Positions 1,073-43,601 of a stretch of 64,000 nt of DNA are shown piece by piece (position 1 is the stretch's first letter; each line of letters begins with the position of its first letter). Source of the stretch: Haliotis rufescens (Eukaryota); the NCBI RefSeq assembly GCF_023055435.1, contig NW_025963813.1, positions 38,502,001 through 38,566,000 of the forward strand. The letters are read 5' to 3'. Both the position numbers and the translations under genes were made by a program. The notes below the pieces were generated by a model that was not told the origin of the DNA, made no database searches, and saw nothing but the letters and a program-made list of their open reading frames with translations.

Positions 1073-1900
1073 TTTTTTATTTTTTTTTATTTTTTAAAAT
1101 CTTTATTCACATTTCAAATAAAATACAATGTGCAACATTTCAACAATTATACATAATTCAAAATCCACTCCCTTTATATCAAACTTTCAAAGCATATTGC
1201 AAATATAGACATTAATAAAATATGATATCATGTTATATTCCTAGGATTGAAAAGTTTGTGCAAGGAAGACCAGAACTAAAAGACAGCTGTATAAATGCAA
1301 TTTAAGAATGCAATTAATTTGGTCATATTGTACTATCTAATAATTTTACCTTAAATATATTTCAACTTAAGCTGAAAACCCTTTTCGTGATTGTTTAAAC
1401 ACAATACATTTGATAAGTAATATAACTACATTGAGAGAGTTGTCTCCCTTCCACTGATGTCGTTAACCAGTTGAGAACAAGCTCCCACGTCTGAGCAACA
1501 TATTCACAATCATAAAATCAAAAACACTAATGTACATACAGTTGAGTACGGGAATGGAATCTTTTACAGTGAGAAAGCTGTCAAATTGGATCCAAGATTG
1601 CACAGCCTTTTTTAAATATTTGAGCCACACATATTATTCTCGAATGGTTCAATAAATAACATAAATAGTAACTGCACACAATATACAGATAACAGATTTC
1701 TGAATGACAAAAGGTTTTCATTGTAAATGTAAAAAAGGTGTTGATAATTTAAATAGTTTTCAATATACTTTTATTTACCCTGCTTGATCTAAATTATCAA
1801 TTATTTCGATCAATACAGTGTGATCTACATTCGTATTAAGTAATATTTGATTTTTTTGTTTCCTTACTAAAAAATATAATATGTATAAAATATATCTTGT
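1073..1900 (-). mobile_element. Probable decayed L1/Tx1-like LINE 3' end (also ~29050-29860)
   Basis: Minus-strand FYDCEYVAQTWELVLNWL resembles the ORF2 C-terminal Cys motif; minus-strand AATAAA plus A-rich tail at 1073-1107. Confidence 0.45.
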
Positions 1901-6090: not shown

Positions 6091-6920
6091 TCATGTGTTA
6101 TGAAGTGGTGTGTCACCTGTCCTATTCTGTACCTGTATATCAGCCCCAGCCTTTAGTAACAGTTCAACACACTCTTTCGATCCATAGATTGATGCTTCAT
6201 GAAGTGGCGTGTAACCTGAGTTGTTTTGTACTTTTACATCAGCCCCAGCCTTCAGTAACAGTTCAACACACTTTTGAAATCCACACCTGGATGCGTTATG
6301 AAGTGGAGTGTCGCCTGTCTCGTTTTGTACTTTCACATCAGCCCCAGCCTTCAGTAACAGTTCAACACACTTTTGAGATCCACACCTGGATGCGTTATGA
6401 AGTGGAGTGTCGCCTGTCTCGTTTTGTACTTTCACATCAGCCCCAGCCTTCAGTAACAGTTCAACACACTCTTTCAATCTATACATTGATACTCCATAGG
6501 GTGTCTCGCGTCCTATCTTATCCCCAACATTCACGCCATCCTTCTGTAACAGGTCAAAACGCTCTCTCAATCTACGCCCTGATGCGTTATGAAGTGGAGT
6601 GTCGCCTGTCTCGTTTTGTACTTTCAAATCAGCTCCAGCCTTCAGTAATATATCAACACACTTTTGAGATCCAAACATTGATGCGTAATGAAGTGGTGTG
6701 TCGCCTGATCTATTCTGTACCTGTATGTCAGCCCCAGCCTTCAGTAACAGGTCAACACACTCTTTCGATCCATGGATTGATGCTCCATGAAGTGAAGTGT
6801 GGCCTGAGTTGTTTTGTACTTTTACATCAGCCCCAGCCTTCAGTAACAGTTCAACACACTCTTTCGATCCATGGATTGATGCTTCATGAAGTAGTGTGTT
6901 TCCTTTGTTATCCTCTACAT
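4880..6920 (-). repeat. 99-bp ankyrin-coding tandem array, copy A (~20 units, ~8 translated)
   Basis: Recurrent plus-strand unit ttcagtaacagatcaacacacttttgagatccacac...gaagtggagtgtcgcctgtctcgttttgtacttttacatcagccccagcc at 99-nt period. Confidence 0.93.
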
Positions 6921-9900
6921 TTACTCTCGCTGCAGCTGCCGGGGTGTCTCTTGACTTGATACCTGAATTATTGTCAGCTTTCTGCTTTCTGAAACCTTCA
7001 GCCGATTGACCAACTTCTTTTTCGTCTTCTTCGTGAGACGTATAAAGCTGTTCAAGTAAAAATAGAAGAACCTCTTGGCTTCCTCCCTTGCACGCTGAGT
7101 GCAGTGCAGTATTTCCATTTGGAGCCACCATGCCGACATTTGCTCCTTTTCCCGTCAAAACTCTCACGACATCCAGGTTTCCACTTTCACATGCTTCATG
7201 AAGAGGGAGTTGTCCATGCTTCGATATCATATTGACTGTGGCCCCTTTATCAAACAGCATCTTAACAACATCCAGATTCCCACTTTTACATGCAGCACAT
7301 ACTTCATCGCCACTAAGTTCTGCTCCTGCCACAAGTAAAGTCTTAACAATGTTCGCATGTCCAATTGTACATGCTTCATACAAAGGATTAAAATAGAAAT
7401 CGTGACCAGCAACATTTGCTCCTCCCTCCAGCAAAGCTTTCACAATGCCCTCCGTGCCTGTCCGACATGCCAAAACCAGAGATGCGTACGTACATTCACT
7501 ATCAACATCAACTCTATCCAGCACCAGTTTTACAATTTCTTCCTCTCCACTGAGACAAGCCGCAAATAGAGGAGACATATACTTATACTTATACTTATCC
7601 ACATAACCTACTGCTCCTCTATCCAGTAACAGTTTCACTACGCCCTTGTGACCAGACAGACACGCTTGATAAAGTGAAGTTTTTTTCATCTTATCTGTTA
7701 CATCAATATCTACACCCTTGTCAATCACATACTCCACAGCTGACACAAGACCATGTTTACACAGGTAATGCAGCACAGTTCTGTCATAGCTGTCCGATGC
7801 ATTCAGATCAGGAAGAAGGCGAAGTATCTGGCGTACAAAGTTACAATCTCCAGTCTCCGCTGCTATCATCAGCGGGGTCTGTTCAGGTTCTCCGTAGGTC
7901 GCATTGATGTCCAGTTTTACATGTTGTGTCAGATATGTCAGCACATTTCCTGCAGCATGTTTGCACACACCCAATAAGATCTCATCTATTTCTGACTGAT
8001 GCAGTGTAATGTTTCCCTTCTCCAGTATGTATTTCACCATGGTTGGGGATTTGTTGCTTGGCAGCAACTCCAAACAGGATGCTCGTGTTTTTCTATCAGT
8101 GTTCCTCAGAAATGTATTTACAGATATCTGATATTGTACTTTCAGTATGTTCATCAGTTTATCAATGAAATCAGGATCACAACAGATTTGGTGTGAGATT
8201 ACATATGCCAAGTTGCCCAGCTGAATCTCCATGGCAAATCTCTGCACCAAGTTGTCAATGCAGAAAAGTGGGATTTCTGCAACGAAACCTTGGTTTTCAA
8301 CAGTCCCATGCCTAAGTCGCTGGTTGATGAATGAGAGACTACAATTCTCAATGACAAATACTGGATCTTTTTCAGTCAGAAGAAATGCAACACTGTCATA
8401 GATTGATGGATGGTCAAACATGTATGTTCCATCTTCCAGCTTCAGATATGACCCAACAAGCTTATTGGCAGATGATACACAGTCATGCATCTTGTATTTG
8501 TCTTTATACAATTCAGACTGAGACACTTTACCATCTCCTTGGATCATTGCCTTCAGGAGTTGATGCTTTGATTTATTGTATATTAATTTCTGCAAAGTTT
8601 GGTTTAGAAATTCAAGAGGTCTTGTGAAAAACTCCTTTGCTGATACCTTGGCATTCTGTTTAAAGGCTGTGGCAAAAAGTCTACAGACATGTGGAAACCC
8701 ATGTGGACACGCGATGTAGCTTAATTCAAACATGACCTTTTTCTCAATGTCAACACCTTCCTTTCGAAAAACTGATTTCAAAATATTCAGTTTTTCTTCA
8801 CGATCTATGGTTGGTGAGAGTTCCACTAGATGTTTACTGCTTGTAAGATATTCTCTCGCTCTTCCAAGGTCTGGTAAAGAGGATTTAAGTACATAATCAC
8901 GACCTACAAGAATAAATAAAGATTGTTTCTTTTCATTTTGCTCTGGATTGATGGCAGTTGACTTATTCAAAGCACCATTTAGATCCAAGTCAGGCTTTGG
9001 CAAATCAAGAATCGGACGAAGAGAGGGTCTCCATTTGGTCCACTCTGCAACGTCAAATTCCAGATCACCAAATATATCATCCATCATAATCACTGGGTTG
9101 GTACAAGTCCTGGTGACCTCATTGAACTCGTCTGGGGACACAACTTGGTATACTTGTCTCCCTTGGCTGTGCAGATCTCTGAGGGCCATGTAGGCCACTG
9201 TAGACTTCCCCTCTCCTGGTCTTCCCTTTATTGTCACCCATGTTGCTCCTCTGTCAATCTTCTCCATCACCTCCTTATGTGCCTGTGTCGTAACCATACC
9301 TTGGGTCCATGACTGTATCCTTGATTCTGTTCGTTCTGAAAAAAATATAATAAAATTGATTGAACTGTACAAATCCGATCCTTCTTTCACACATACTGAC
9401 CTAGTGTTATTGTTACAAGCAACCTCTCCTTAATGTATAAATACATTTCACATTTGCTCCACATGATAATAAATTATTAAAACTAAGAACTGATCACTGT
9501 GATATATATCAGTAAATGAGCTGAGAAATTGTGTTAACAAATCTGAGAGTTAATATTTTTGGCTATTGAAAAGTAAATTTGTAAAACAACATCGCAAAGA
9601 ATAAGAACTTTTTCTTAACACAAAACTTGTTAACAAATTAAGCATGCCATTAATGGTCATATTGTTTTACATTGACATCCGTTATCTACTTTTACTATCA
9701 TTTTCATGTTAACTTCTACGTTCGATAATGTAATGGCTCAGAATTGTGGAAATAGTACCTGATGAAGATATGGAACACGTTTCAAGAAAATTAAAAGTAT
9801 CATCTACTATATAGTGCATAGATATTATATTGCAGAAGATGCACGTAGCGTAAGTCTCTTGTCCCTGTTTCTGCATATACCTCTTGCATCAATGTATTGA

Positions 9901-12900
9901 CCCTTTCATCATGTTCACGGTCTTATACTTGACGACTATTTTATCCACAAAAATATAACTCTAAATTACTACAATGATACTTGTACATGAACAATCATCT
10001 ATCTTGCTTTATCCACTGGAACTCACTCCTGATCTTCTGTACTGTAGTCAGTGGTTTCTCCTCCTCCTCCTCCTGGGGACAGGGCTGCGATTTACCGATG
10101 TTCTGAGTCCCTCCGATGTTCAGATTCCTGCCGCCCTTCACCGTCACTTCTCCAATCTGCTGTTGGACTTGGAGAACGTAATACTGAATTGCTGTAAAGT
10201 ACATAATTATTTGGTAACTTGACACTCGTGAAAGGGAAATTTCGGGGAACAAGGCCAAAACCATTAAGATATCAGTTCTAATTATATGACTTAATTGTTT
10301 AAAACCTTTTAATCGCCAACATGTTATATTAGTACTTATATATGGAGAAACGAAGCACAAATGAAGCCTTATTATTAGTTATCAGGTTTATACTTATTAT
10401 GTAAAATGTATTCATTGATGAAAAGATAATGCATGCATGAATTATAAACAAGCGTCTGAATGTGTTCATGTATGATGACAACTTGACGGCAAATAGTCTG
10501 CAACATTGAAAAAAATACGTTATTAGCATATAAGTTACTTGATTAATGTACAAACGTGTTTCAATTTACGTTTGATATTACGGTTGTTACGGAAAAAATG
10601 TTTGTTTTTATCATTTGGAACTACCGCCTTGTGGTTGTTCGATCACCCGGCGACAAAATAAGAAAATGGTACTTGTTATTTCCCTGCCTGGCGCTCATCA
10701 TTAAGGCATTGAACAAAGACGATCTGTTGAGTATCTGAGTGGGGTATTCGTGTTAAACCTCTGTGTGATATCTCAATGGGTTCGCACTATAAAACCGGCA
10801 TCAGCCGGACTAGCACAAGCAGCCGCAACCATGCATGAAAGTCGCTAAATATATGCAATTACCTTCAACGCAATGTCATACCCCATTCACTTCAAGCTGT
10901 TGCCATTTGATATTCGGGACTAGGATGTCAATGTTGAAGGGTGGGGGTATATATTTCTGTTAAGTGAACGATATATACTTTTTTTTGGTGAATCCTGAGG
11001 TCAAATAATTTTTAGAGCAATTACGGGAAAATATAATATTTTTACAAGAATATGAATTACCCTGAAATATATATAAGGGGCATTGAAAGCCAGATGAAAT
11101 AATGTTTTCCTGATTTAATGTAAACTGCTCTTGATTACATAAGCGCAGAGGTTTTGTTTGCGTTTTTAAGTGAAGATACATTATCTTCATCAATGTCAGC
11201 ATCTAGTGTGACTAAGTCAAGAAGGCAAATCTTCTTACTTGAAGCAGCACCAGATGATGGTGATGGCTCAGGCACCCAGTTTGTGTCCATCTCCTGTGTA
11301 TGAGATTGTGAAGGCATCAATGCCATGCTGGAATCCTGGCAGGTAGATGAGCCCTGTTTGGCAATATGATGCGTCAGCGTTTTTAATGCTGTGGGAAAAC
11401 AAGGCATAATTATTGTGAAGTATACTTAAAAGAGAGCATTCGTTGGAAGCTCCAAAACTGTCCGAATAATCTGATTTGATGAACTGTCTTGGCGCCCAGA
11501 AGGTTAAAAAGAACAATGTTTAGAGGGGTATTATTAAACGTAATGGTGACACGTCAGTCAAGACAATTATACTGGACTTTACACTGAATACCACCAAACA
11601 TTTAGACATTCTATGCAACTACATGCCAAGTATATATAAAGAAAACCACTTTACAAAAGTGCCGGAGTCTTCTGGAAAATATATCTATATCACGGTTCGC
11701 TTCCTTACCATCATGGATACTGTGAGAGTTCTGACGCTGGCCAGTCTCAAGCACCACTTTTGAAAAAGCTGCTGCCCCCAATGTAACATTCCCGCCTTCC
11801 TCATCATCTTCATCAGTTTCTCCTTCTTCTTCCTCCACAGTGTCCGCTGTTTGAACGTCCTCTGTCGCAACATCAGCAACTGCTGACCAAGTGCTCCTGG
11901 TGACTGTAGAGCATGGAGGACCTTTGTGCCTTTTACCGATTTTTTCTTTCCTCTTTTTATTTGATATTTGTTTTCCTTTACCCCTCTTTCCACATCTAGC
12001 ATCGTGTTGCTTTTTCTTGACAGCAGATGGCCTCTGCTTCTTTCGTGATTTCATGTTACCTTTACATTCGGTGTCCCTTTTAGATTTTGTTTCTGTTTGA
12101 GTGTCTTTTTCAGAATATAATTTCCCTGGTCCCTTTAAAGGGTAAGATGTGTCATCCTTCCTTAATACAACCCTTCTGTCTAATGTTGACATTTCTTCAG
12201 ATTTAGAATTTTGTTGTGAATTCAATCCTTCATCTTTTTCATGCCGTTGTCGCATATTTCTCTCAGTGATGCGTAAGCTCCTTCGTTTATCACTGATATC
12301 TTTGTGTTCTCTCATCTCATATCCTCTCCTTGTTCGCCCCTTTAGTTTGGTCAACCCTTTACTTCTGGTTTGTACTTCCTCATTTCTGCTTTCTGTCTTA
12401 AATGTCCCTTTCATTAACCGGGTCACGATCTTGTCTCTTGTCCCTGTTTTCTTATCCTGCTTGCATTCACTTACTGGTTCGTCTGTCCTTATCTTTAGGT
12501 TGGTGGACTCTTTACTTCTGATCCCAACTCGATGTTTTTTCGCGCCTTTCGCCGTCCTCTTCTTCGCCATGTCAGTCCCTTTATTTCTTGACTCTAACGA
12601 CATTGATCTGTTAGCAGCACTGTCAGTCTCATTTGGCCTTCTTCTGTTTCTCTGGGTCAACCCTTTACTTGTGCCTTCAACTCTCATTCCCTCATTGGCC
12701 CCACCCTCTGTGTCCTCCATCCTTCTTGACTTTACCCTTGGCAGCCCTTTACTTCTGCCTTCAACCCTCATCCTCTCATGGGCCTCACCCTCTGTGTCCT
12801 CCATCATTCTTTTCTTTACCCTGGTCAACCCTTTACTTCTGCCATCAACCCTCATTCTCTCATTGGTCTCACCCTCTGTGTCCTCCATCCTATTCTTTAC

Positions 12901-13308
12901 CCTGGTCAACCCTTTACTTCTGCCCTCAACCCTCATTCTCTCATTGGTCTCACACTCTGTGCCCTCCATCCTTTTCTTTACCCTGGTCAACCCTTTACTT
13001 CTGCCCTCGACCCCCATTCTCTCATTGGTCTCACCCTCTGTGTCCTCCATCCTTCTTTTCTTTACCCTGGTGAACCCTTTACTTCTGCCCTCAACCCTCA
13101 TTCTCTCATGGGCCTCACCCACTGTGTCCTCCATCCTTCTTTTCTTTACCCTGGTCAACCCTTTACTTCTGCCCTCGACCCTCATTCTCTCATGGGCCTC
13201 ACCCTCTGTGTCCTCCATCCTTCTTTTCTTTACCCTGGTCAACCCTTTACGTCTTGTGTCCACCTTTACTCTCTCTCTTTGTCTCCACTCTCTGTCCCAT
13301 GCACCCAT
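6091..13308 (-). CDS. NLR-like protein copy A: basic 28-aa repeats + RHIM-like motif + nSTAND3-type NTPase + ankyrin repeats. Predicted exons 13308-11709, 11388-11143 (donor defective), 10191-10027, 9335-6091; ~1750 aa
   Basis: Walker A IKGRPGEGKST and Walker B PVIMMDDIFG (nSTAND3-like), followed by many GxTPLH-xA-xxG ankyrin repeats; all three introns are phase 1 with AG acceptors; donors G|GTAAGG (11709) and A|GTGAGT (10027); start codon uncertain. Confidence 0.8.
12200..13290 (-). repeat. 84/81-bp coding repeat (RSKGLTRVKKRRMEDTEGEAHERMRVEG), ~7 near-identical units plus several diverged units; copy A only
   Basis: Visible in ORF 11611-13323 and as repeated plus-strand ccctggtcaaccctttacttctgccctc. 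Confidence 0.9.
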
Positions 13309-13644
13309 CTTTCCCTTACACAAGCCAACACTTTACTTCTCGTCTGCATGTGCACTGTTTTCACGCCATCAATTACTGTGTTATTGATCCTTGCTAACTT
13401 TACTTGGGTGAATCGTTTCTCTATGACTACGACCTGCCCTCTCTGTCGCTCATATTTTCCAGTTGGAATATTTTTATTATTGGGCTTGCTGTTTCCTTCA
13501 GTACCACCACAGGAGAAAAGACATTTATATCAATCTGATGCTACAACTGTTCTCATTCTTGAACGGTGAATTCTCGGAAACCTGCACGAATAAGAAAATA
13601 AAAACACAACTACGTTTGTAAACACACCTCTGCAGATACAGTCT

Positions 13645-36422: not shown

Positions 36423-38080
36423 TTACAGATCAACACACTTTTCAGATCCACACCTGGATGCTTCATGAAGTGGAGTGTCGCTTGTCTCGTTTTGTACTTT
36501 TACATCAGCCCCAGCCTTCAGTAACAGGTCAACACACTTTTCAGATCCGCACATTGATGTTGCATGGAGTGCTGAGCAGCCTGATTTGTTTTGTACTTTT
36601 ACATCAGCCCAAGCCTTCAGTATCAGATCAACACACTTTTCAGATCCACACCTGGATGCTTCAAGAAGTGGAGTGTCGCCTGTCTCGTTTTGTACTTTTA
36701 CATCAGCCCCAGCCTTCAGTAACAGATCAACACACTTTTCAGATCCACACCTGGATGCTTCATGAAGTGGAGTGTCGCCTGTCTCGTTTTGTACTTTTAC
36801 ATCAGCTCCAGCCTGCAGTAACAGATCAACACACCTTTGACATCCATACCTCAATACTTTATGAAGTGGTGTGTCGCCTGTTCTATTCTGTACCTGTATA
36901 TCAGCCCCAGCCTTCAGTAACAGGTCAACACACTCTTTCGATCCATACATTGATACTCTATGGAGTGTCACGAGTCCTCTCTGATCCCCGACATTCAAGC
37001 CAGCCTTCCGAAACAGGTAAAAACGCTCTTCAGATCCGAGCCCTGATACGTTATGAAGTGGAGTATCGCCTGTCTCGTTTTGTACTTTAACATCAGCTCC
37101 AGCCTTCAGTAACATATCAACACAATTTTGAGATCTGCACATTGATGCGACATGAAGTGGTGTGTCGCCTGTTCTATTCTGTACCTGTATATCAGCCCCA
37201 GCCTTCAGTAACAGGTCAACACAGTCTTTAGATCCATACATTGATGCTGCATGGAGTGCTGTGTAGCCTGAGTTGTTTTGTACTCTAACATCAGCCCCAG
37301 CCTTCAGTAACAGGTAAACACTCTTTTGAGATCCGCACATTGATGCTGCATGGAGTGCTGTGCAGCCTGAGTCGTTTTGTACTTTTACATCAGCCCCAGC
37401 CTTCAGTAACAGATCAACACACTTTTGAGATCCAAACATTGATGCGTTATGAAGTGGTGTGTCGCCTGTCTCGTTTTGTACTTTTACATCAGCTCCAGCC
37501 TTCAGTAACAGGTCAACACACTTTTCAGATCCATACCTGGATGCGTTATGAAGTGGTGTGTCGCCTGTCTCGTTTTTTACTTTTACATCAGCTCCAGCCT
37601 TCAGTAACAGGTCAACACACTTCTGAGATCCATACCTCAATGCGGTATGAAGTGGAGTGTCGCCTGTCTCGTTTTGTACTTTTACATCAGCTCCAGCCTT
37701 CAATAACATATCAACACACTTTTGAGATCCAAACATTGATGCGATATGAAGTGGTGTGAAGCCTCGTCTATTCTGTGCCTGTACATCAGCCCCAGCCTTC
37801 AGTAACAGGTCAACACACTCGTTCGATGCATGGATTGATGCTCTATGGAGTGCTGTGTAGCTTGAGTTGTTTTGTACTTTTACATCAGCCCCAGCCTTCA
37901 GTAACAGATCAACACACTTTTCAGATCCACACCTTGATGCATCATGAAGTGGAGTGTCGGCTGTCTCGTTTTGTACTTTCACATCAGCTCCAGCCTTCAG
38001 TAACATATCAACACACTCTTTCGATCCATGGATTGATGCTACATGGAGTGCTGTGTTTCCTGTGTTATCCTCTATATTTA
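33450..38080 (-). repeat. 99-bp ankyrin-coding tandem array, copy B (~46-47 units, ~16 translated)
   Basis: Same 99-nt unit; 16 full repeats plus one partial counted in the 1370-aa ORF. Confidence 0.93.
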
Positions 38081-41000
38081 CTCTAGCTGCAGCTGCCGGG
38101 TTGTCTCTTGACTTGATATTTGAATTATTGTCAGCTTTCTGCTTTCTGAAACCTTCAGCCGATTCACCAACTTCTCTTTCGTCTTCTTCGTGAGACGTAT
38201 AAAGCTTTTCAAGTAAAAATAGAACAACCTCTTGGCTTCCTCCCTTACACGCTGAGTGCAGTGTAGTATTTCCATTTGGAGCCACCATGCTGACATTTGC
38301 TCCTTTCCCCGTCACAACTCTCACGACATCCATCTTTCCACTTTCGCATGCTGCATGAAGAGGGAGTTGTCCATCCTTCGATATCATATTGACTGAGGCT
38401 CCTTTATCAAACAGCATCTCAACAACATCCAGATTCCCACTTTTACATGCAGCACACACTTCATCGCCACTAAGTTCTGCTCCTGCCACAAGTAAAGTCT
38501 TAACAATGTTTGCATGTCCATGTGTACATGCTTGATACAGAGGCTTAAAATGGATATCCCGACCAGCAATATTTGCTCCTCCCTCCAACAAAGCTTTTAC
38601 TATTCCCTCAATGCCGCAAGCACATGCCCAACCCAGAGACCTATCCTTCAATTCACAATTAACATCAGTTCTATCCAGCACCAGTTTTACAACTTCTTCC
38701 TTGCCATTGAGACAAGCCGCAAGTAGAGGAGACTTATGATAGTTATCCACATAACCTACTGCTCCTCTATCGAGTAACAGTTTCACTAGGCCCTTGTGAC
38801 CAGACAAACACGCTAGAAAAAGTGAAGATTGACCCATCTGATCTGGTACATCAATATCTACACCCTTGTCAATGACATACTCCACAGCTGACACAAGACC
38901 ATGTTCACACAGGTAATGCAGCACAGTTCTGTCATAGCTGTCAGATGCATTCAGATCAGGAAGAAGGCGAAGTATCTGGTGTACAAAGTTACAATCTCCA
39001 GTCTCAGTTGCTATCATCAGCGGGGTCTGCTCACGGTGTCTGTATGTAGCATTGATGTCCAGTTTTAAATGTTTTGTCAGATATGTCAGCACATCACCTG
39101 CAGCATGTTTGTACACACCAAATAAGATCTCATCTATCTCCGTCTGATGCAGTGTAATGTTTCCCTTCTCCAGTATGTATTTCACCATGGTTGAACATTT
39201 GTTGCTTGGCAGCAACTCCAAACAGGATTCTAGTGTTTCTTCATCAGTCTTCCTCAGAAATGTATTTACAGATATTTGATATTGTTCTTTCAGTATGTTC
39301 ATCAGTTTATCAATGAAGTCTGGATCACAACAGATTTGATGTGAGATTACATATGCCAGGTTGCCCCGCTGAATCGCCAAGGCAAATCTCTGCACCAAGT
39401 TGTCAATGCAGAAAGGTGGGATTTCTGCAACCAAACCTTGGGTTTCAACAGTCCCATGTCTAAGTCGCTGGTTGATGAATGAGAGACTAGAATTCTCAAT
39501 GACAAATACTGGATCTTTTTCAGTCAGAAGAAATGCAACACTGTCATAGATTGATGGATGGTCAAACATGTATGTACCATCTTCCAGCTTCAGATATGAC
39601 CCAACAAGCTCATTGGCAGATGATACACAGTCATGCATCTTGTATTTGTCTTTATACAATTCAGACTGAGACACTTTCCCATCTCCTTGGATCATTGCCT
39701 TCAGGAGTTGACACTTTGATTTATTGTTTATTAATTTCTGCAACGTTTGGTTTAGAAATTCAAGAGGACTCACGAAAAACTCCTTTGCTGATACCTTGTC
39801 ATTCTGTTTAAAGGCTGTGGCAAATAGCCTACAGACATGTGGAAACCCATGTGGACACGCGATGTGACTTAATTTAAAAATGACTTTTTTCTCAATGTCA
39901 ACACCTTCCATTTGAAAAATTGATTTCAAAATATTCAGTTTTTCTATATGATCTGTGGTTGGTGAGAGTTCGACTAGATGTTTACTGCTTGTAACATATT
40001 CCCTCGCTCTTCCAAGGTCTGGTAAAGAGGATTTTAGTACATAATCACGTCCCACAAGAATAAATAAAGATTGTTTCTTTCGATTTTGCTCTGGATTGAT
40101 GTCAGTTGAACCATTTAAAGTTAGCTCCAAGTCAGGATTTTGCAAATCAAGAATGGGACGAAGAGAGGGTCTCCACTTGGTCCACTCTGCAACGTCAAAT
40201 TCCAGATCACCAAATATATCATCCATCATAATCACTGGGTTGGTACAAGTCCTGGTTACCTCATTGAACTCTTCTGGAGACACAACTTGGTATACTTGTC
40301 TCCCTTGGCTGTGCAGATCTCTGAGGGCCATGTAGGCCACTGTAGACTTCCCCTCTCCTGGTCTTCCCTTTATTGTCACCCATGTTGCTCCTCTGTCAAT
40401 CTTCTCCATCACCTCCTTATGTGCCTGTGTCTTAACCATACCTTGGGTCCATGACTGTATCCTTGATTCTGTTCGTTCTGAAAAAATATAATACAATCGA
40501 TTGAACTGTACAAATCCGATCCACCTTTCACACATACTGACCTAGTGGTATTTTTACAAACAACCTCTCCTTATTGTGTAAATACATTTCACATTTGCTC
40601 CACTTGATAATAAATTATTAATACTAAGAACTGATCACTGTGATATATATCAGTAAATGAGCTGAGAAACTGTGTTAACAAATCTGAGAGTTATTATTTT
40701 TTGCTACTCAAAAGTAAATTTGTAAAACAACAAAAAAGAAAGAAACAAGAACATTTTCTTCAGACAAAACTTGTTAACAAATTAAGCATGCCATTAATGG
40801 TCATATTGTTTTACATTGACATCCGTTATCTACTTTTCCTATCATTTTCATGTTAACTTCTACGTTCGAGAAATTAATGGCTCAGTGAGTTAGTGAGTTG
40901 GGTTCAACGCCACTTTTAACAGTATTCCAGTTACATCACGGCGTGTCAGCTTAATGTGGTTAGGAAAGCTCGAAGTGATGCAGGTCTCAGACGTTTAGCA

Positions 41001-43601
41001 CATCGGTGAAACCCACGAGCACGGGTATGGTGCTGACAAACCTAGAAACATAATCGGGACGAACCGGGATTCGAACCCACAATCAAAGGTTTCTGGCGTG
41101 CCTAAGGGACGTAACTCTGCACAGAAAATCGCGGCGCCTCAGACGACTGTAATGGCTCAGAATTGTCGAAATAGTACGTGATGAAGAAATGGAACACGTT
41201 TCAAGAAAATTAAAAATAACATTTACTATATAGTGCACATATATTATAGTGCAGAAGATACACGTAGCGTAAGTCTCTTGTCCCTGTTTCTGCATATACC
41301 TCTTGCATCTCTGTATTGACCCTTTCATCATGCTCACGGTCTAATATTTGACGACTATTTTATCCAAAAAAATATAACTCTAAATTACTACAATGATGCT
41401 TGTACATGAAGAATCATCTATCTTGCTTTATCCACTGGAACTCACTCCTGATCTTCTGTACTGTAGTCAGCGGTTTCTCCTCCTCCTCCTCCTCCTGGGG
41501 ACAGGGCTGCGATTTACCGATGTTTTGAGTCCCTCCGATGGTCAGATTCCTGCCGCCCTTCACCGTCATTTCTCCAATGTGCTGTTGGACTTGGAGAACG
41601 TTATACTGAATTGCTGTAAAGTACATAATTATTTAGTAACCTGACACTTGTGAAACGGCAATTTCAAGGAACAAGGCCACAACCATTCAGATATCAGAAG
41701 TTCTAATTATATAACTTGAGTGTTTAAAACAATTTAATTGCCAACATGTTATATTACTCATATATGGAGGGAGAAACGAAACACAAATGAAGCCTTATTG
41801 TAATTAATTATTTATCAGGTTTATGATTATAATGTAAAACGTATTCATTGATGAAAACGAATTATGAACAAGCGTCTGAATGTGTTCATGTATGATGACA
41901 AGTTGACGGCTTGCCATATGTTGATCTGTCAAATTGTGGTATGTAAATAGCTCAACTTACTTTGTTTACAACATAGACAAAATTACGTACTTAGCATATC
42001 AGTTACTTGATTGTTGTACAAGCATGTTACAATTTACCTTCAATATTACGGTTGTTACGGGAAAATGTTTTTTCTATCATTTGAAAATACTGCCTCCGTG
42101 GTTGTTCGATCCCGGCGCCAACGTAAGAATATGTTACTTGTTGTTTCCCTGCCTGGTGCGTTATCATTAAGACATAAAACATCGATTTTGTGAGTATCTG
42201 AGTGGGTTATCCATGTTAAACTGCTGGGTGATATCTCAATGGGTTCGCAATATAAATCCGGCATCAGCCGGACTAGTACAAACAGCCTCAAACATGCATC
42301 AAAGTCCCTATATATATATGCAATTACTTTGAACGCAACATCATACCCCATTCATTTCATGATGATGTTAGGCCATGTAATATTCAGGAGTAGGATATGT
42401 GTGTTGGGGCGTGGGGGTACATATTTCTGTTAACTGAACGATATATACTTTTTTAAAAGTAAATCCTTAGGTCAAATAATTTTGCAGCATTTTCGGGAAA
42501 AGATTATATTTTTTCGAGAATATGAATTACCCTAAAATATACACAAGGGGCATTGAATGCTAGATGAATAAATGTTTTCCTCATTTTATGTTAACCTAAA
42601 TGTTCTTGATTACATACGCTCAGAGGTTTTGTTTGCGTCTTTAAGTGAAGATACTTTATCTTCATCAATGTCAGCATCTAGTGTGACTAAGTCAAGAAGG
42701 CAAATCTTCTTACTTGAAGCAGCACCAGATGATGGTGCTGTCTCAGGCACCCAGTTTGTGTCCATCTCCTGTGTATTTGATTGTGAAGGCATCAATGCCA
42801 TGCTGGAATCCTGGCAGGTAGATGAGCCTTGTGTGGCAATATGATGCGTCAGCGTTTTTAATGCTGTGGGAAAACAAGGCATACTTATTGTGAAGTATTC
42901 TTAAAAGAGAACCGCCTCCGTGGTCTAGTGGTAGAGCGCCCGCCCGGAGAGCGGAAGGTCCGGGGTTCGATGCCCGGCGGTATTCATGTTAAATTGCGGC
43001 AGTGAGCATCAGTCTAGACTAGTACAAGCAGCCACACAAACACACACACGTACATGCACGTCGCTGTATAAGTGCAATAATCTTGGACCCGACATTAAAC
43101 CCCATTTCACCTCACCTCGCCTGTTAGAAGTGAGCATTCGTTGAAAGCTTCGAAACTGTCATGAGGATCTGATTTGATGAACTGTCTTGGCGCCCACATG
43201 GTTAATAAGAACAATGTTTAGAGGGGTATTATTAAACGTGACACGTCAGTCAAGACAATAATACTTGACTTTGGACTGAATACCACAAAGCATTCTATGT
43301 AGCTACATGCCAAGTACATAAGAAGAAAACCGCTTTACAAAAGTGCCGGAATCTTCTGGAAAATATATCTACATCACGGTTCCCATTCCTTACCATCATG
43401 GATACTGTGAGAGTTCTGACGCTGGCCAGTCTCAAGCACGACTTTTGAAAAAGTTGCTGCCCCCAATGTAACATTTCCGCCTTCCTCATCATTTTCATCT
43501 GTTTCTCCTTCTTCTTCCTCCAGATTGTCCGCTATTTGAACGTCTTCTGTCACAACACCATCAACATCGTGTTGTTTTCCCTTGACTACTGTGTTATTCA
43601 T
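36423..43601 (-). CDS. NLR-like protein copy B: acidic N-terminus + RHIM-like motif + nSTAND3-type NTPase + ankyrin repeats. Predicted exons 43601-43394, 42863-42618, 41613-41446, 40477-36423; ~1558 aa
   Basis: Same motifs as copy A; all splice sites are canonical GT-AG, phase 1; exon lengths 208+246+168+4055 = 4677 nt, a whole number of codons. Confidence 0.82.
40886..41149 (-). mobile_element. SINE family 2, specific to copy B, in the NLR-like gene intron
   Basis: Perfect TSD taatggctcag at 40875-40885 and 41150-41160; single empty site at 9731-9741 in copy A. Confidence 0.9.
42911..43123 (+). mobile_element. tRNA-derived SINE, family 3 ((CACCT)n tail), specific to copy B
   Basis: A box tggtctagtgg, B box ggttcgatgcc; imperfect TSD ttaaaagaga/ttagaagtga; empty site at ~11426-11436. 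Confidence 0.8.

Follow-up and report, generated by a model that had tools for sequence, protein, structure and literature searches.

A stretch of 64,000 nucleotides of DNA from the abalone Haliotis rufescens (contig NW_025963813.1, positions 38,502,001 to 38,566,000, called the window here) carries on its minus strand two genes, A and B, in which a small exon encoding a conserved motif of 33 residues is joined in frame to a large exon encoding an nSTAND3 nucleoside triphosphatase (NTPase) and a series of ankyrin repeats. The motif is specific to Haliotis, is restricted to the nSTAND3–ankyrin family and is under purifying selection. By analogy with the amyloid motifs carried by NOD-like receptors (NLRs) of fungi and bacteria, it may be a proximity-activated, homotypic β-assembly motif, a reading that is given a probability of roughly 0.37 and in which the motif would stack as β-structure, would depend on proximity and would serve in immunity.

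The borders of the small exon in gene A read ...tttacAG before position 10191 and GTGAGT after 10027 on the minus strand, and the 165 nt between them amount to 2 + 54 codons + 1, so that both flanking introns are in phase 1. The last base of the exon forms a Lys codon together with the 'aa' at 9335-9334, which follows a tttttcAG acceptor, and the frame carries on into the 1080-codon exon 9335..6091 with its Walker A sequence GRPGEGKST. The exon of gene B, 41613..41446, joins 40477 in the same way, in frame and with AG/GT borders. Both joins are exactly those of the RefSeq models P0001 (LOC124116506 of H. rufescens, to which the NTPase region of gene A is 100% identical) and P0003 (gene B); it is from these RefSeq proteins that the spliced context was taken, the exons themselves having been searched separately. 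The motif exon is already annotated in RefSeq, within a protein named 'uncharacterized'. An earlier, sequence-only reading of the window had proposed that symmetric phase 1-1 exons of 165 nt and 168 nt are spliced in frame to the NTPase exon, and in this it was borne out by the borders, the phase and both gene models, while the peptides that it quoted for the two exons are exact. The introns of A and B are alike too, which marks the two genes as a recent duplication and makes their agreement with each other weak evidence when taken alone.

The nSTAND3 profile (PF20720) matched gene A with 65.2 bits (E=7e-18) and gene B with 62 bits, the Pfam cut-off being 27.2, and many ankyrin repeats were found by Pfam in both large exons, in arrays whose length varies greatly among paralogs. 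AlphaFold2 was given a 714-residue member of the family with an alignment of 38 sequences, the modelled part being without the ankyrin repeats, and the resulting fold of the NTPase module was compared with known structures using Foldseek. It matched Apaf-1, NLRP3, NOD2, the plant resistosome NLRs ZAR1 and NRC, Avs5 and MalT, with E values in the range of 1e-6 to 1e-4, and also SAMD9. The module thus has both a score above the Pfam gathering score and the fold of a STAND NTPase (signal transduction ATPases with numerous domains), and the proteins are a lineage-expanded, NLR-like nSTAND3–ankyrin STAND family that lacks leucine-rich repeats (LRRs), the LRR-less architecture that had been read from the letters of the window and whose nSTAND3 and ankyrin parts Pfam confirmed in both large exons.

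The exon of gene A encodes, in this order, the 33-residue motif, an acidic linker and the start of a conserved helix that precedes the NTPase. An alignment of 24 distinct motif variants over 33 columns (A1) gives the family consensus xQYNxxQVRQQFGDVTVxGARNLNIGGTQNIGx, with a mean column identity of 79% and seven invariant positions (Q2, Q10, T16, N22, G26, G27 and Q29). Its composition is 15% G, 15% Q, 13% N, 11% V and 8.5% T, with few charged residues and only 0.5% P, and the alignment, as read here, suggests four short, β-prone stretches of alternating hydrophobic and polar residues, split by conserved Gly/Asn turns. A six-frame search of the 1.3 Gb H. rufescens genome found at least 39 copies free of stop codons, and the motif-only A1 profile recovered the same genomic set as the whole exon. 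The CAG acceptor and the phase are kept in all 30 of the paralogous copies inspected, the donor junction reads '...IR-S' (split as A and GT) in nearly all copies, and by comparison of coordinates 23 of the 24 family-1 NTPase exons have a motif exon 0.4-3 kb upstream.

The same picture extends to other abalones, since the motif was found in H. rufescens, H. rubra, H. cracherodii and H. asinina, and it was not detected in the nSTAND3 proteins of other organisms among 1.84 billion representative proteins. Most of 48 Haliotis homologs, with NTPases that are only ~50% identical, carry it ~45 residues before the P-loop, and their sequence upstream of the motif is divergent. Across 35 proteins the conservation score is 8-9 of 10 at the motif, equal to that of the P-loop, as against 2-5 in the preceding 100 residues. 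Between gene clusters, the proportion of synonymous differences (pS) is 0.5-0.87, which is near saturation, against a proportion of nonsynonymous differences (pN) of 0.12-0.25, and the constraint therefore lies on the peptide and is not one on the DNA or an effect of recent gene conversion. That the motif might not be conserved among paralogs and orthologs had been named beforehand as grounds for dropping it, and the at least 39 genomic copies and four species speak to the contrary. The same numbers, together with the intact state of the 39 copies, their conserved splice sites and phase and a pN far below pS, make it hardly credible that the exon is a functionless neutral spacer or annotation artefact.

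Two further arrangements of the motif were seen among the paralogs. Upstream of one complete motif exon lies a tandem array (L022, G000:C90:24596151-24597038, minus strand) in which the motif exon's acceptor region, together with its first 15-18 codons, recurs several times, interleaved with a microsatellite reading THSL. The H. rufescens paralog P0002, with an NTPase that is 90% identical, has a degenerate motif, FQYKVQQFGDVTNVIFSATQNTG, with another G/N-rich unit, GDHVHHQNMAAIVEGGMGNNTTN, standing twice in front of it, which suggests a turnover of N-terminal elements.

In STAND proteins the N-terminal side of the NTPase is the output module, which works by induced proximity, as do the CARD, PYD, TIR and death domains and the amyloid motifs of fungi and bacteria. 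The only strongly conserved element that the abalone proteins have at this output position is a motif that appears disordered as a monomer and resembles the rungs of a solenoid, and it is for this reason that proximity-driven β-stacking is favored. In the AlphaFold2 model, the motif and the whole N-terminal region have a predicted local distance difference test (pLDDT) value of ~25 (25-30 for the motif and a second conserved island described below, with one weak helix) and make no contacts with the fold, which is composed of the NTPase and a helical module and begins at the helix just after the acidic linker; the model thus leaves the motif unstructured as a monomer. A prediction of a four-copy complex of the motif scored 0.01, which counts neither way.

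The resemblance to solenoids comes from several weak matches. Among the look-alikes in a language-model Atlas, 23 of 30 were fragments of filamentous haemagglutinin, a weak likeness (0.91, 143 shared features), and the hmmscan matches to the motif were sub-threshold ones to Gp5_C and LRR_11 only, the Gp5_C near-matches and other below-threshold solenoid matches having E values of 0.03-0.09. A metagenomic repeat protein in which the first half of the motif recurs is counted as a further weak look-alike of the solenoid kind. Judged by its sequence, the motif is similar to a β-solenoid piece of one or two rungs, which would be too short to fold alone. It is weakly similar in this respect to single rungs of β-helix units such as the C-terminal repeat of T4 gp5 (PF06715) and filamentous haemagglutinin (PF13332), but it differs from them in that an abalone chain has no more than one or two rungs and would form no helix alone, and the sub-threshold matches do not amount to homology.

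The mechanism that is proposed from these features would begin with the sensing of a ligand by the ankyrin array. The NTPase would then oligomerise and bring together several copies of the motif, each of them tethered to the nSTAND3 NTPase by the acidic linker and one helix, and the gathered motifs would stack into an ordered cross-β or β-solenoid-like assembly, which could serve as the output or as a clustering platform. A more far-reaching version holds that the motif represents a new, non-RHIM family of animal amyloid-type motifs (RHIM being the RIP homotypic interaction motif discussed below), i.e., a 33-residue β-arch on at least 39 nSTAND3–ankyrin receptors, with a second family on a sister subfamily, which would nucleate cross-β structure upon oligomerisation, either with a partner yet unfound or by purely homotypic clustering. 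This version is put forward tentatively and is rather doubtful.

The closest analogs are the NLR motifs of fungi and multicellular bacteria (HET-s/HRAM, sigma, PP, PUASM, BASS1-10). In both cases a STAND NTPase that is combined with a repeat sensor is adjoined directly on its N-terminal side by a short motif (about 20-35 aa), which is conserved and rich in G, N, Q and hydrophobic residues, appears unstructured as a monomer and is flanked by disorder, and in both cases one motif occurs on many paralogs of a genome and different motif families occur on related NTPases (PMC9815663; bioRxiv 10.1101/2020.01.06.895854). NLRs that share one motif in large numbers, and motifs in mid-sequence, are known in fungi, and there are descriptions of genomes in which NLR-side motifs number dozens and effector-side ones are few (PMC9815663). 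The abalone motif differs in that no effector match for it was found, in its mostly internal position, away from the extreme N-terminus, in its nSTAND3 NTPase in place of NACHT or NB-ARC, in its animal host, and in matching no described family. The idea of an amyloid motif combined with a STAND NTPase and repeats in an animal is not wholly new, given the amphioxus prediction of Kajava et al. 2014 (PMC4262963), who predicted RHIM–NACHT–repeat proteins in Branchiostoma, e.g., BF82280. These proteins likewise are animal STAND proteins with C-terminal repeats and a predicted amyloid-type motif where a death fold is usually placed, but theirs are RHIMs that a profile can detect, on NACHT, whereas the abalone proteins have a new motif family on nSTAND3 and ankyrin repeats; both cases are predictions. 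A literature search found no published description of the abalone motif or of its protein family. Outside RHIM proteins, amyloid-type signalling on NLR-like receptors has been shown so far only in fungi and multicellular bacteria, and if the proposed β-assembly is right, signalling of this fungal and bacterial style would exist in a mollusc and would open a way to the output pathway of STAND proteins with neither LRRs nor death domains, of which marine invertebrates have many.

Several results weigh against β-assembly. Where NLR amyloid signalling has been proven, its hallmark is a matching pair of motifs. The six-frame genome search, run both with the whole exon and with the motif-only profile, turned up no other gene that carries such a match, at a sensitivity of roughly ≥18 bits, which a partner motif at 30-40% identity would escape across the 1.3 Gb. 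Nor was a matching motif found outside the nSTAND3–ankyrin family among the 1.84 billion representative proteins (about ≥35 bits), so that the effector templated through a matching motif, as envisaged in the sequence-only reading, has so far turned up in neither. The motif is internal in most family-1 gene models, 100-500 residues from the N-terminus. A comparison of its profile with all PDB chains gave no meaningful match among solved structures, and hmmscan gave no match at E≤10 to the RHIM, HET-s and sigma/PP families for the exon peptides or the 24 variants. Gene models and conserved splice sites, finally, are the grounds on which the exon is taken to be spliced.

Some matches from these searches were rejected. 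The only PDB matches to the motif, alphavirus E1 at E=3.4, are put down to chance. All genomic and database matches, including truncated or fused gene models, belong to the nSTAND3–ankyrin family except for two metagenomic repeat proteins, P0049 and P0055 (from ENA metagenome contigs of 87-151 kb), which are giant tandem-repeat proteins containing ITQQLGNITVQGSA, a stretch resembling the first half of the motif that was matched 17 times in P0049 and 5 times in P0055. They were not accepted as partners, since they have only this first half, as many repeated units, which was taken as a convergent β-strand pattern; they are probably fibre-like β-repeat proteins of a microbe or virus.

The main rival explanation requires no matching motif elsewhere, in agreement with the failure to find one. 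It takes the motif to be a docking peptide, i.e., an extended linear site for one conserved folded adaptor or enzyme, bound for example by β-strand addition and without self-stacking. A single hub partner would be expected to leave a near-uniform motif, such as that seen in at least 39 paralogs, and the predicted disorder of the monomer also suits a docking site. However, 33 contiguous conserved residues, rich in G, N, Q and V and free of proline, are unusual for docking motifs, the weak look-alikes are solenoid rungs and the partner is so far hypothetical, and docking is accordingly regarded as possible though unlikely. If it is a docking site after all, the motif would provide a handle on a downstream partner shared by about 40 receptors.

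The short linker that tethers the motif beside the NTPase also lends itself to regulation in cis, in which the motif would hold the receptor off through the conserved first ankyrin repeats or through the NTPase/winged-helix part, or would swap onto the neighbouring protomer on activation. Extended peptides are commonly bound by the grooves of ankyrin repeats, which would suit this explanation. Yet in the AlphaFold2 model, which is without those repeats, the motif does not dock on the NTPase module, and the ankyrin arrays of the paralogs are of very different lengths, which leaves regulation in cis improbable.

The label "RHIM-like" had been attached to the motif in the sequence-only reading on the strength of an ungapped alignment to the RHIM of RIPK3. 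The residue positions cited there are arithmetically right, but the alignment has 2/17 identities and a BLOSUM62 score of 10, which was reached by 1261 of 5000 composition-preserving shuffles (25%), and is therefore no better than chance. The signature G-phi-Q-phi-G, which unites RHIM, PP and BASS3 (Dyrka et al. 2020), occurs in 0/24 variants, as does phi-Q-phi-G, and the core tetrad [IV]-Q-[IV]-G is absent; the partial patterns Q-phi-G and G-x-Q-x-phi-G are present in 15/24 and 18/24, respectively. When the RHIM profile (PF12721) was used in a six-frame search of the genome, 11 places were found, 4-5 of them above the 20-bit cut-off, and none of the 11 is any of the 39 motif exons. The translations at these other places show the canonical cores NVQIGNYN, GVQIGPNN and GVQIGNQN, from which it follows that the RHIM model works in the abalone genome. 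The core NVQIGADG is also among those at L061-L065.

The motif as a RHIM was thus rejected by profile, by core signature and by alignment score, and of the Pfam models that had been suggested as a check, nSTAND3 matched and RHIM did not. What the motif shares with RHIM (PF12721; RIPK1, RIPK3, ZBP1, TRIF; Drosophila cRHIM) is that it consists of a short non-globular stretch of the homotypic-interaction type, enriched in G, Q and N and placed in an innate-immunity protein; what it lacks is the [IV]Q[IV]G or G-phi-Q-phi-G core and any match to the Pfam RHIM model. A divergent but true member of the RHIM family, signalling through the RHIM proteins of the abalone, would fit the short G-, Q- and N-rich sequence in an immune-type protein and the partial patterns. 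It is very improbable and largely refuted by sequence, with PF12721 missing all 39 motif exons while matching 11 other places, no hmmscan match, core patterns in none of the 24 variants and a RIPK3 alignment at the level of chance.

Upstream of the motif, the gene models have 100-500 residues that comprise an acidic run, a second conserved island and a variable linker rich in P, S, T and Q, and no Pfam domain was found in any N-terminal region of the family that was examined. The second island consists of a stretch rich in G, A, V and Q, with the consensus SQLGAGAVAVKFQTVQQESYQLV, and of a short helix (LAQHIVGCC) behind it; over 20 paralogs share it, the copies in the two genes of the window, at 43392-43601 (-) and 11707-11943 (-), being diverged. 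The linker between the two islands has 0-300 residues and is sometimes repetitive, and it is absent in P0005 and P0022, where the islands abut. A profile comparison gave no significance (P=0.046, probability 1.2%) to the idea that the upstream island is a pseudo-repeat akin to the motif, and the idea was dropped. An unrecognised folded N-terminal domain built from both islands would be in line with the presence of the second island in so many paralogs and with its abutment on the motif in P0005 and P0022. The pLDDT of about 25-30 for both islands, bar the one weak helix, the variable, repeat-rich linkers of 0-300 residues that part them and the failed profile comparison all go against such a domain, which is considered quite improbable.

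In a sister subfamily, the NTPase of which is 41% identical, the corresponding small exon, likewise with a phase-1 donor, encodes another G/N-rich motif (…TGMSGGQAIYSNIVGIGNIY…). The sister subfamily includes one copy that begins immediately behind gccaccATGG, a strong Kozak ATG, which places its motif at the extreme N-terminus. Two further exons of the sister type (L084, L085) were seen on another contig, C556. The coordinates of these exons, of the features of genes A and B and of the canonical RHIM cores are collected in the table.

Table. Features of genes A and B (window coordinates), exons of the sister-type motif and canonical RHIM cores of the H. rufescens genome
Feature	Position	Strand	Content and evidence
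Gene A motif exon	10027..10191	-	165 nt, phase 1-1; sequence, splice sites, translation, RefSeq model P0001
Gene A motif core, 33 codons	10091..10189	-	Row 1 of the alignment; conservation island
Gene A large exon	6091..9335	-	nSTAND3 NTPase, helical/winged-helix part, ankyrin repeats, terminal stop codon; Pfam
Gene A upstream exon region (approximate borders)	11707..11943	-	Acidic run and second, diverged N-terminal island; tblastn of the P0001 N-terminus
Gene A second upstream exon (approximate, partial)	11267..11389	-	S/T/Q-rich linker, poorly conserved; tblastn of the P0001 N-terminus
Gene B motif exon	41446..41613	-	168 nt, phase 1-1; RefSeq model P0003
Gene B motif core, 33 codons	41513..41611	-	From L002:1567-1665, converted to window coordinates
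Gene B large exon	36423..40477	-	nSTAND3 NTPase and an ankyrin array longer than that of gene A
Gene B first coding exon	43392..43601	-	Met, acidic run, diverged N-terminal island; RefSeq model P0003
Sister-type motif exon	L072:4943-5032	-	
Sister-type motif exon	L072:1498-1584	-	
Sister-type motif exons	L084 and L085, around 1501-1581	+	
Canonical RHIM cores (L061-L065)	G000:C35:4328554, C35:19245429, C35:4289066, C35:6864065, C68:1080021		Above or near the Pfam cut-off

Two minor observations concern the surroundings of the exons in the window. An open reading frame of 570 codons at 11611-13323 (-), which encodes imperfect repeats rich in K, R and E (…RMRVEGRSKGLTRVKKRRMEDTEGE…), forms the first ~480 residues of the RefSeq model P0001. 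Since Pfam gives no match for it and the N-terminus of P0003 contains nothing corresponding, this part of the model looks like a doubtful 5′ extension. The intron of gene B is ~280 nt longer than that of gene A owing to an insert at about 40900-41150 (-), which has a tRNA-like end (…gggttcgaatcccgg…) and looks like a tRNA-derived short interspersed nuclear element.

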